In this document: positions 49,001 to 63,948 of the stretch, one piece after another
How positions within the stretch are numbered: the stretch's first letter is position 1
How the letters are laid out: each line of letters begins with the position of its first letter
Assembly: GCA_002269645.1 (NCBI GenBank)
Contig: NIVC01000301.1
Coordinates: 604,460-668,459, forward strand
Length of the DNA stretch: 64,000 bases
DNA from: Macrostomum lignano
Taxonomy: Eukaryota
Reading direction: 5' to 3'
Position numbers and translations under genes: made by a program
The notes under the pieces: model-generated
The model's input: only the letters and a program-made list of their open reading frames with translations
Databases searched by the model: none
Told to the model about the DNA's origin: nothing

Positions 49001-52000
49001 AGGGATTCGCGAGGCGAGGCGGAGACGAGCAGACAGATTGCTTACAGTGTCCCCCATGGAGACTGCAGCAGCGCCTTATCCTGTTGGGTGTGGGATTGGT
49101 ATTGAGCAATCTATGCGGTTGTTGTCAAAACTAAAGTATTTCATTTCGAATTTTGCAACGAGGGCTTTTTTATGACATGACTCGTGCGCCCTCGGCTTAC
49201 CCGGCCTTTCGTGCTCATCGCTGCTTATTGAGCCCTCTCGCCTTGTTTTGCACGCGGCTTTCAGAGCTGCGCGTCAGCAAAAAATTTTATGCCCAAAGTC
49301 TGCCTGCTCGTTTGAGCTTTTAAAGTTCCTCCTTTAAACTGACTGCTCAAAGTGGCTCAAGTTGGATGGAGAGCCGGCAAACAGAATTCTAAATATAGCT
49401 GCCTGTCTTACCTGCCACCGCGCCTCACTCAGCTCTCAGCTCTGCTCTCAGTCTAGCAGTTCCCCTGCTCACTCAGCTCTCAGTCTAGCAGTCCCCCTGC
49501 TCACTCAGCTCTCAGTCCAACAGTTCCCCTGCTTACTCAGCTCTCAGCTCAGCTCTTAGTCTAGCAGTCCCCCTGCTCGCTCAGCTCTCAGTCTAGCAGT
49601 TCCCCTGCTCACTCAGCTCTCAGTCTAGCAGTTCCCCTGCTCACTCAGCTCTCAGCTCAGCTCTTAGTCTAGCAGTTCCCCTGCTCGCTCAGCTCTCAGT
49701 CTAGCAGTCCCCCTGCTCGCTCAGCTCTCAGTCTAGCAGTTCCCCTGCTCACTCAGCTCTCAGTCTAGCAGTTCCCCTGCTTACTCAGCTCTCAGCTCAG
49801 CTCTTAGTCTAGCAGTCCCCCTGCTCGCTCAGCTCTCAGTCTAGCAGTTCCCCTGCTCACTCAGCTCTCAGTCTAGCAGTTCCCCTGCTCACTCAGCTCT
49901 CAGCTCAGCTCTCAGTCTAGCAGTTCCCCTGCTCGCTCAGCTCTCAGTCTAGCAGTTCCCCTGCTCGCTCAGCTCTCAGTCTAGCAGTTCCCCTGCTCAC
50001 TCAGCTCTCAGCTCAGCTCTCAGTCTAGCAGTCCCCCAGCTCACTCAGCTCTCAGTCTAGCAGTTCCCCTGCTCGCTCAGCTCTCAGTCTAGCAGTCCCC
50101 CGGCTCACTCAGCTCTCAGTCTAGCAGTTCCCCTGCTCACTCAGCTCTCAGCTCAGCTCTCAGTCTAGCAGTTCCCCTGCTCGCTCAGCTCTCAGTCTAG
50201 CAGTTCCCCTGCTCGCTCAGCTCTCAGTCTAGCAGTTCCCCTGCTCACTCAGCTCTCAGCTCAGCTCTCAGTCTAGCAGTCCCCCAGCTCACTCAGCTCT
50301 CAGTCTAGCAGTTCCCCTGCTCGCTCAGCTCTCAGTCTAGCAGTCCCCCAGCTCACTCAGCTCTCAGTCTAGCAGTCCCCCAGCTCACTCAGCTCTCAGT
50401 CTAGCAGTTCCCCTGCTCACTCAGCTCTCAGTCTAGCAGTTCCCCTGCTCACTCAGCTCTCAGTCTAGCAGTTCCCCTGCTCACTCAGCTCTCAGTCAAG
50501 CAGTTCCCCTGCTCACTCAGCTCTCAGTCAAGCAGTTCCCCTGCTCACTCAGCTCTCAGTCAAGCAGTTCCCCTGCTCACTCAGCTCTCAGTCTAGCAGT
50601 TCCCCTGCTTGCTCAGCTCTCAGTCTAGCAGTCCTCCTGCTCACACCGCTCTCACTCCAAACTCGCAGGCTGCTGGCATTCATTCTACCCACATTCGATC
50701 AGCCGGCCCTGAGGTCACTCAGGGTCATGCGGCCTCTCAAACTGGTCACCGGGTTTGAGAGTAAGTAGCCATGCAGTCCCCCGGAGACTGCGCTGTCGGC
50801 CAAGCGCGCACACTGCCGCGCAGAAGCCCCGGTTGCAGGTGTCCCAGTCGGGAAGATCAGGCCTCAACACTGCTTATATATTGATAAATGTACTCCGTTT
50901 GTCTTGTGTACAATATATTAGCGCACTGTCCTAGGCTCAGAGTCCGGCTTTGTAACTGCAGCGAACCCCGACTGGCCCGGTGAAGTTTTCAAATTTTGTT
51001 TTCACACCCAAAGCTTTTGTCCCCCACCGCAAGGCACCCCCTAGACCAACCTCATTCAAAGCACAAATGGCATATTTATGCAATGTTCAAGTTGTCTTGT
51101 GCATAGGAGAGCCCAGTGCCGGTTGTTGCACTGTATAGCAGTAAACAACATGCCTGCATACTTAGCTTTAATCATAGTTGATTTTGTTTTTCCCCAGTCG
51201 GTCAGGCAGACCTGAAGACGCCTCCGTAGACTGCAGAAACCCAGAAACTGTGTAGCTGAAACTTGCGCAGATCTCTCAAGCTTTGCATGCCAACCAGCAG
51301 CTGCCCTCTGCATCCGAAGCAAAGCTGATGTTGTTTGCTATCGCAACGCGCTCTTTGCAGGTTCGTCACCCTGTTCGCCTCCAACCAGAGCAGCTTCGAC
51401 CTGCGGACGCTGCGGGCAGTGCGGGTGCTGCGCCCGCTCAAGCTGGTGTCCGGAATCCCAAGTACAGCAGCCCAGCTCGTTCGCTTATAGTTTATTTCTC
51501 TCTCCAAGCCACAGATTGTTTTTATAAGCTTAGATTTTTAATCACAATTTTACTCTATCGGAATCGGATTACAGCTTAGACTGTTTTAATTTGCATCTGA
51601 CAGCAGCATGATGTCATGAATAACTTCACTGCCTAGAACTGAATAACCAATATGTTATAAAGCCTGCAGCTATCACTAACTTGACTACCTGGGACCGAAA
51701 TTTTACACTGCTTCTTCTCCTTCTGAGCTCTCTGGCAACTGTATTCAAAATTCATTAGAGACACGCGACTTTCCTTCTATAACTAATTTTTTTTCCTTAT
51801 GTTACTCAGCCTGCTTGTTGTTGCCAACGCTCCTGCGGACTTCTCTGATCCCGCCTGCCCCCCATCCCTGGAGAATCAAGGGAGCAGCCCCCCTCAGCCC
51901 CCCCTCAGCCCAAGCAAAATTGCCTGCCCGCGAAAAGTTTGTGGTGTTGACTCGGGTGGGGGAGCTGAGCCAATCTGTCCCTCCCCAGCGGCAACTCAAC

Positions 52001-63948: not shown

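Follow-up and report, generated by a model that had tools for sequence, protein, structure and literature searches.

Three old pairs of duplicated exons, probably used as mutually exclusive alternatives, in the Cav2 calcium channel gene of the flatworm Macrostomum lignano

A stretch of 64,000 nucleotides from the flatworm Macrostomum lignano (contig NIVC01000301.1, positions 604,460 to 668,459 of the forward strand; hereafter the window) contains the 5' half of a gene for the alpha-1 subunit of a Cav2 calcium channel (46069-64000, + strand), and three exons of this gene are present in two tandem copies. They encode the S3-S4 region of domain I (the IS4 pair, e4a/e4b), the S3-S4 region of domain II (the IIS3-S4 pair, e12a/e12b) and part of the domain II pore (the pore pair, e15a/e15b). 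Our overall reading, to which we give a probability of about 0.78, is that these are three old tandem duplications of which both copies have been kept as mutually exclusive exons. Alternative exon pairs are a well-known feature of calcium channel genes; the novelty lies in how far back the IS4 pair reaches, in the flatworm correspondence between exon versions and gene paralogues, and in the hybrid intron by which the pore pair is wired.

Most invertebrates have a single Cav2 gene for all fast transmitter release, so that splicing is their main route to presynaptic diversity. If our reading is correct, a domain I voltage sensor without its outermost S4 arginine (R1) has been kept since before protostomes and deuterostomes separated and represents a natural gating variant, an alternative IS4 sensor having so far been studied only in a different form, that of the fly. 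The match between exon versions and the paralogues of schistosomes and tapeworms would provide one case in which alternative exons and gene duplicates are interchangeable, and would tell parasitologists which structural features separate the two parasite Cav2 channels. Finally, the pore pair would be a second clear example of exclusivity by hybrid intron, in a gene family different from that of JNK. Because M. lignano is tractable by transgenesis, exon deletions are feasible.

Three duplicated exon pairs in one Cav2 gene

The exon model that we rebuilt has 16 exon positions, starts with the ATG at 46069, reaches into the II-III linker and is open over 736 codons with either member of any pair. 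Two more exons, at about 63.6-64.0 kb, code for the last part of the II-III linker and for IIIS1-S2 and take the gene to the end of the window; domains III (from S2) and IV lie outside it. The best protein match is BOX15_Mlig012532g2 of M. lignano itself (P0001 hereafter), with 96% identity over the whole query and, exon choices aside, a single residue different from the model. The next matches are Cav2 proteins of many phyla ("type A alpha-1", N/P/Q/R-type) at 60-68% identity, and Cav1 proteins ("muscle calcium channel", L-type) score lower, at 47-53%. The model carries two of the four filter glutamates of the EEEE set (CITMEGWTD in domain I, LT(G/S)EDWN in domain II) and, in the I-II linker, the standard beta-subunit binding motif (AID). 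Judged by these matches the gene is a flatworm Cav2 (non-L-type, presynaptic-type), as had been proposed in an earlier reading of the window made from its letters and open reading frames, without database searches (the sequence-only reading).

The three pairs start where that reading had placed them, and the exact exon ends are now set (Table 1); it had also named correctly the near-canonical copy of each pair (e4b, e12a and e15b). In all six frames of the window each exon peptide has exactly one significant second copy, its partner (E-values of 7e-6 for the IS4 pair, 5e-11 for the IIS3-S4 pair and 2e-12 for the pore pair). The next-best matches reflect the similarity between S4 of domain I and S4 of domain II (E of at least 0.006), and a search of the window returned no tandem copy of any other exon of the gene. 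The members of each pair are tandem homologues with the same phases, similar lengths and usable splice sites, and none of the six exons has a stop or an indel. Within each pair the lengths (92/101, 113/113 and 121/118 nt) share one non-zero class modulo 3, so that inclusion of both members, or of neither, shifts the frame; the open frames and the frame incompatibility claimed at the outset are both confirmed by the exon model. The accompanying statement that all splice sites are intact has to be qualified: all are usable, but the donor of e12a is GC (ag|GCaagt, 56128-56129) and not GT, and both pore exons end in U12-type donors (|GTATCCTTT for e15a, |GTATCCTA for e15b). That the duplicated exons would serve as alternative, mutually exclusive pairs in this Cav2 gene is, we think, well supported by their sequences and by comparison with other animals. 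Combined freely, the three choices could give the eight variants put forward in the sequence-only reading.

Table 1. Exons, special introns and repeats of the Cav2 gene, in window coordinates
Feature	Position	Strand	Remarks
Exon 1	46069-46292	+	ATG, N-terminus; junction to exon 2 confirmed by P0001 (...IIIEWGPFEY)
U12-type AT-AC intron after exon 1	46293-46505	+	donor |ATATCCTTTT; branch site TTCCTTAAC at 46468-46476; 3' end cac|
e3	48441-48580	+	constitutive; IS2-IS3; upstream partner of IS4 pair
CT-rich minisatellite	49424-50654	+	32/108-nt units, ~1.2 kb; ends 14 nt before e4a acceptor
e4a	50669-50760	+	alternative IS3-S4 exon, 92 nt
e4b	51361-51461	+	canonical IS3-S4 exon, 101 nt; R1-R4 + K5; used in P0001
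e5	52643-52789	+	constitutive; IS4-S5 linker and IS5; downstream partner of IS4 pair
e11	55302-55414	+	constitutive; IIS2-S3; upstream partner of IIS3-S4 pair
e12a	56015-56127	+	near-canonical IIS3-S4 exon, 113 nt; GC-AG donor (ag|GCaagt)
e12b	56811-56923	+	IIS3-S4 exon, 113 nt; signature ASLFEVIWQ; used in P0001
e13	58498-58629	+	constitutive; end of IIS4 to IIS5
e14	58969-59041	+	constitutive; domain II turret and pore helix P1 (ends LLTVFQ); U2-type donor
(GACA)n microsatellite	59719-60631	+	~228 copies, intronic; ends 32 nt before e15a acceptor
e15a	60664-60784	+	domain II filter, P2 helix, turret, first half of IIS6, 121 nt (VLTSEDWN...); used in P0001
Hybrid intron e15a-e15b	60785-61179	+	U12 donor |GTATCCTTT at 60785; U2 3' end
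e15b	61180-61297	+	canonical version of pore exon, 118 nt (ILTGEDWN...SQGGVGQGM)
U12-type GT-AG intron after e15b	61298-62424	+	branch site TTCCTTAAC at 62386-62394, 30 nt before caag|
e16	62425-62525	+	constitutive; second half of IIS6; sole U12-compatible acceptor downstream of pore pair

The a and b copies have only 48-58% of their nucleotides in common. Synonymous divergence between them (pS) is saturated at 0.65-0.83, so that the duplications must be old, and yet frames, phases and splice signals have survived. Nonsynonymous divergence (pN) is 0.31-0.40, well below the saturated pS, and the suggestion of purifying selection on both copies therefore holds; it is also backed by the orthologues of e4a in other phyla and by the paralogue matches of e12a and e12b (both described below). 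For e15a taken alone the support is weaker, P0001 and this one species being its sources. The locus has a second genomic copy, which, on scaffold NIVC01000272.1 (Mlig_3_7), is collinear with the window and differs from it by about 1.4% substitutions in non-repeat intron sequence. All six exons are intact there. Over their 658 nt the two copies differ by 2 substitutions, where the rate of non-repeat intron sequence would predict 9.2 (P = 0.005); there are no indels, and e4a, e12a and e15b show no difference at all.

Since redundancy is high in M. lignano assemblies, where blocks of at least 95% identity add up to 180 Mb (PMC5730564), one might suspect that the duplicates are artefacts of assembly, produced by collapsed or interleaved haplotypes or homeologues in a partly polyploid genome. 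Homeologous copies, however, differ by 1-3%, against 42-52% of nucleotides between the a and b exons; moreover, the same layout is present in the independent Mlig_3_7 scaffold, and the IS4 pair recurs in assemblies of three other phyla. We find an artefact of this kind scarcely credible.

The voltage-sensor pairs in other animals

In a gapless alignment, e4a has a proline in place of R1 (FDQPALR against FDLRTLR) and keeps R2-R4 and K5. Its S3-S4 linker is three residues shorter than the canonical one, and the S4-S5 region starts with GFES in a-type exons against GIPS in the canonical exon. A search with e3, e4a and e5 joined showed an e4a-like exon (LLAYILPNLNQPA[LV]..., 77-81% identical to e4a) in Cav2 proteins of cestodes, trematodes and monogeneans, and the a-type exon is also found in predicted proteins of Aplysia, Littorina, Bulinus and Intoshia. 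The tandem order, a and then b, with the same flanking exons and phases, is found in the orthonectid Intoshia, the gastropod Elysia and the annelid Ridgeia, the a exon of Intoshia and that of Ridgeia having the same 92 nt as in Macrostomum, that of Elysia 89 nt. In the crinoid Antedon, the IS4 exon is the sole difference between RefSeq isoforms X5 (a-type) and X1 (canonical). The a-type signature [DN]-x-P-x-[LV]-R ... G-[FVI]-[EQ]-S is thus found upstream of the canonical exon, with the exception that Intoshia has Ala where other a-types have Pro, and over the last 22 residues mean identity is 0.76 among a-types against 0.61 between types. The pair was not found in the rotifer Brachionus, which has no introns at the site, and no a-type exon was detected in a Limulus scaffold whose assembly is gapped.

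Because a and b exons stand together in mollusc, annelid and orthonectid genes and are both used in crinoid isoforms, the comparison of sequences shows the IS4 pair to be older than the protostome-deuterostome split and an ancestral feature of bilaterians. A catalogue of splicing in Aplysia Cav2 lists eight sites, none of them in IS4 (PMC10657410), and in the searchable literature we found no description of an IS4 pair with an R1-less member.

The sequence-only reading had pointed in this context to the mutually exclusive IS4 exons of Drosophila cacophony. The likeness is real (the same family, the S3-S4 sensor of domain I, tandem alternatives and a change of S4 charge), and in the fly the choice between IS4A and IS4B shifts the activation voltage and decides active-zone localisation (PMC11828482). 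The two pairs nevertheless differ in boundaries and in sequence type: with 99 nt each (PMC11828482), the fly exons cannot share both boundaries with exons of 92 and 101 nt; R1, which the Macrostomum a-type lacks, is present in both versions of the fly; and the second fly type has an identity of 0.78 to canonical exons and of 0.56 to a-types. With R1 kept, a canonical-like sequence and 99-nt exons, the fly pair is not demonstrably the same duplication, and homology of the two is not supported by these data; the Macrostomum pair is instead orthologous to that of molluscs, annelids, the orthonectid and the crinoid. The choice of IS4 exon would tune the voltage dependence or the kinetics of domain I activation, as cacophony IS4 splicing does. 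In vertebrates, exons 8/8a of Cav1.2 and 37a/37b of Cav2.x are also tandem, chosen singly and of tissue-specific function, but they sit elsewhere (IS6 and the C-terminal EF-hand region, respectively); to our knowledge, vertebrates have no alternative splicing of this kind at any of the three Macrostomum sites.

Two side observations concern animals with the a-type exon. Antedon isoforms X2 and X5 differ at residues ~1435-1461 by another apparently mutually exclusive pair, in the region of a late pore loop and beyond the part of the gene that the window covers. A Bulinus truncatus protein of 590 residues (P0417, annotated as P/Q-type alpha-1A) combines an a-type IS4 with Ala for the domain II selectivity Glu (ILTGADWSN), which may point to a divergent paralogue or to a mistake in the gene model.

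The two IIS3-S4 exons both keep all S4 charges and differ in outer S3, in the S3-S4 linker and in the first turn of S4. Their closest relatives are found in the parasitic flatworms (neodermatans), where two channels, Cav2A and Cav2B, have been cloned from Schistosoma mansoni (PMC3194816). The identity of e12a is 0.74-0.82 to neodermatan paralogue 1 and 0.58-0.63 to paralogue 2, that of e12b is 0.71-0.74 to paralogue 2 and 0.61-0.63 to paralogue 1, so that exon types and paralogues are reciprocal-best matches. Judged from this correspondence, the e12 duplication cannot be younger than the divergence of macrostomids from parasitic flatworms.

The IS4 versions appear to follow the same partition, as far as the parasite genomes let it be seen. 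Full-length paralogue 1 proteins carry e4a-type, e12a-like and e15b-like exons together, and a gene with an e4a-type exon and no b-type exon nearby is present in Schistosoma margrebowiei, Dibothriocephalus and Schistocephalus. A separate locus, in Paragonimus, has the b-type IS4 only, on a gapped scaffold. The e12b signature (ASLFE.IWQ) occurs in a second set of proteins, from Dicrocoelium, Taenia, Schistosoma mattheei, Mesocestoides and Spirometra, and in Dicrocoelium the two e12 types lie on different chromosome-scale contigs. Parasitic flatworms have two Cav2 genes, each of which appears to keep one version of IS4 and of IIS3-S4; the locus with the b-type IS4 only and the gene of e12b type would be one and the same. 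In terms of the S. mansoni channels, one paralogue would correspond to the e4a and e12a types and the other to e12b and probably e4b, with the difference that the parasites have the versions in separate genes, one exon in each, and Macrostomum has them as alternatives in one gene.

The history we have in mind is one in which an ancestor had both pairs in a single gene, which in the parasites would have been duplicated, each copy then keeping one version of each pair. Macrostomum would retain the ancestral state, splicing doing there what the parasites do with two genes. On this account Macrostomum is expected to favour the combinations a+a and b+b, and its known transcript is b+b. The flatworm comparison therefore points to the sets {e4a, e12a} and {e4b, e12b}. 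These are not the sets that had been suggested in the sequence-only reading, where canonical and divergent exons were thought to be chosen together: P0001 contradicts that idea, since it joins the canonical e4b with the divergent e12b and e15a. We go one step further only tentatively, with a confidence somewhat short of even: coordinated sets (an R1-less IS4 with the a-type IIS3-S4, the canonical IS4 with the b-type) might be ancestral, and in the parasites, after the gene duplication, reciprocal loss of exons might have left one set to each of Cav2A and Cav2B. On this view the exon for the R1-less IS4 would be a pan-bilaterian element, present from crinoids to flatworms, lost in vertebrates and undescribed in the literature searched.

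The annelid Ridgeia also has two copies of the IIS3-S4 exon, both resembling the canonical or a type; an independent duplication is here just as likely as homology with the Macrostomum pair. The downstream Ridgeia copy has the same ag|GCaagt donor as e12a (30862-30863 of the Ridgeia locus, L008), a match that may reflect common regulation or mere chance.

The pore pair, its splice sites and the case for exclusivity

Both pore exons keep the domain II filter Glu and the Asp that follows it (TSEDWN in e15a, TGEDWN in e15b). The residue before the filter Glu is Ser in e15a, against the near-universal Gly of e15b, and the outer turret also differs, that of e15a containing an N-S-S sequon for N-glycosylation. 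The canonical e15b has 70-74% identity to the annelid and Limulus exons. An analogy had been drawn with exons 12a/12b of invertebrate Cav3 and the pore exons of NALCN, which are also mutually exclusive and also lie in the domain II pore of four-domain channels (PMC7382465, PMC3557258). In those genes the alternative exons alter the pattern of lysines and cysteines in the pre-helix turret, or a filter residue, and switch the Ca/Na preference (PMC7382465, PMC3557258). The Macrostomum exon starts after helix P1, and the differences are confined to position -1 (Gly or Ser) and to the turret between P2 and S6; with Glu and Asp retained in both copies (SEDW/GEDW), the analogy with a selectivity switch is weak. 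We would expect modest effects of the pore choice on permeation, block or glycosylation, and do not predict a Ca/Na switch. A turret similar to that of e15a (SQRNPNSNGM) is present in the leafhopper Homalodisca, in 8 of 8 isoforms; it is thus constitutive and lineage-specific there, and we rejected it as a sign that e15a belongs to a widespread pair.

The exclusivity of the pore pair would be hard-wired by the types of its splice sites. The donor of e14 is U2-type (|gtgggaagg), and e15a and e15b both have U2-type acceptors and U12-type donors, so that the joins e15a-e15b and e14-e16 are incompatible. The motifs agree with this assignment. On the + strand of the window TTCCTTAAC occurs at 2 sites (0.2 expected), upstream of e2 and of e16; the donor motif is RTATCCTT for e1 and e15a and GTATCCTA for e15b; ahead of the e15b acceptor at 61180 there is no motif resembling TCCTTAAC, the U12 branch site. 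The AT-AC intron after exon 1, a conserved one located in D1S1, has been described before (PMC6259924). Elysia, Aplysia, Ridgeia and Limulus also have a U12-type intron after the pore exon; a cestode, Intoshia and a rotifer show it converted to U2. Copying the exon together with this ancestral U12 donor created the U12/U2 hybrid intron. By its splice signals the layout is that of exons 6a/6b of the JNK genes (MAPK8-10), with a U2 intron upstream, a U12/U2 hybrid between and a U12 intron downstream (PMC1874599), where the hybrid intron has been shown to drive the one-or-other choice in JNK2 (PMC1874599). It differs from JNK in gene and animal, having arisen at an ancestral U12 intron of calcium channel genes, and is known here from sequence.

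For the IS4 and IIS3-S4 pairs, exclusivity would come from the shift of frame, the faulty transcripts being presumably removed by nonsense-mediated decay, and regulated exon choice may add to it. Beside the alternative exons one finds one weak GC donor (that of e12a) and repeat-rich introns. A mechanism of docking and selector RNA structures was considered and dropped, inverted-repeat searches having returned only short pairs, pairs of low complementarity or runs of G/C, none above chance; Rfam has no match in the window.

Several points weigh against our reading and have to be set against this evidence. Only one isoform, P0001 (e4b + e12b + e15a), is annotated, e4a, e12a and e15b are not in it, and fragment-sized protein searches for the junctions of these three exons returned no Macrostomum protein besides P0001. 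The comparison with the second genomic copy is weak per exon, each set of three exons giving P ~0.055. No convincing competing RNA structure was found at the e4 and e12 clusters. The link between the b-only IS4 and e12b in parasites comes from fragmentary models and a count of two genes, not from one contig; among the models found, those of paralogue 2 cover domain II onward, and no full-length protein links its IS4 and IIS3-S4 types. There is no counterpart of e15a among the other species examined, so that its age and function rest on this species. Its acceptor has a poor pyrimidine tract, and both U12 introns place their perfect TTCCTTAAC branch site 29-30 nt upstream of the 3' splice site, farther than the ~11-13 nt that separate the two in the second intron of Elysia, Aplysia and Ridgeia; the long distance appears to be tolerated here since the junction of exons 1 and 2 is confirmed by P0001.

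The most straightforward use of these points would be to say that one member of each pair is a dead relic and that the gene makes essentially one channel, that of P0001; the weaker GC donor of e12a could be read in the same way. The annotation of Mlig_3_7 in GenBank was, however, made from RNA-seq and de novo transcriptome assemblies by a pipeline that dropped isoforms below 75% of the major one (PMC5730564), so that the lack of other annotated isoforms tells little, and two of the three "divergent" exons do sit in the transcript-based model. Above all, the exons outside P0001 are those with clear counterparts in other animals, the orthologues of e4a and e12a in neodermatans (77-81%, and 74-82% to paralogue 1) and those of e15b in an annelid and Limulus having been described above. 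A relic of an age at which synonymous sites are saturated should be unrecognisable, and here frames, lengths, phases and splice signals are intact, and unchanged in the second genomic copy. We regard the relic hypothesis as unlikely.

A different view is that the extra exons are "poison" exons, tuning the abundance of the channel through mRNA decay. It is true that including both copies shifts the frame in every pair, and that an exclusivity based on frame implies that some double-inclusion transcripts are made and then degraded. But a poison exon needs no conservation at the protein level, and e4a is conserved across phyla and e12b across flatworm orders; the a-type exon is used productively in Antedon and in neodermatan proteins; and at the pore pair double inclusion would be blocked by the incompatibility of the splice sites. 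This hypothesis seems to us slightly less probable still than that of relics, and we keep to mutually exclusive use of both copies.

Repeats and neighbouring sequences

Besides the two long repeats listed in Table 1, the introns of the gene contain a 24-nt array of ~71 copies in intron 2 (46648-48352) and a 43-nt array in intron 7 (53816-54123), and the lengths of intronic tandem repeats vary between the two genomic copies. Just past e16, in the region of the II-III linker, lies a perfect 9-nt repeat, AAGGTCCCG (62609-62928, 35.6 copies, 100% match), which must be intronic since P0001 skips it; if included, it would read (GPE)n, (KVP)n or (RSR)n. Upstream of the channel gene in the window, open reading frames at 1564-4422 (- strand) with DEAD-box helicase and DBP10CT domains represent a DDX54/DBP10-like gene, an open reading frame at 6137-7855 (- strand) has the second BRCT domain of nibrin, and 11529-12557 (+ strand) contains a reverse-transcriptase fragment.

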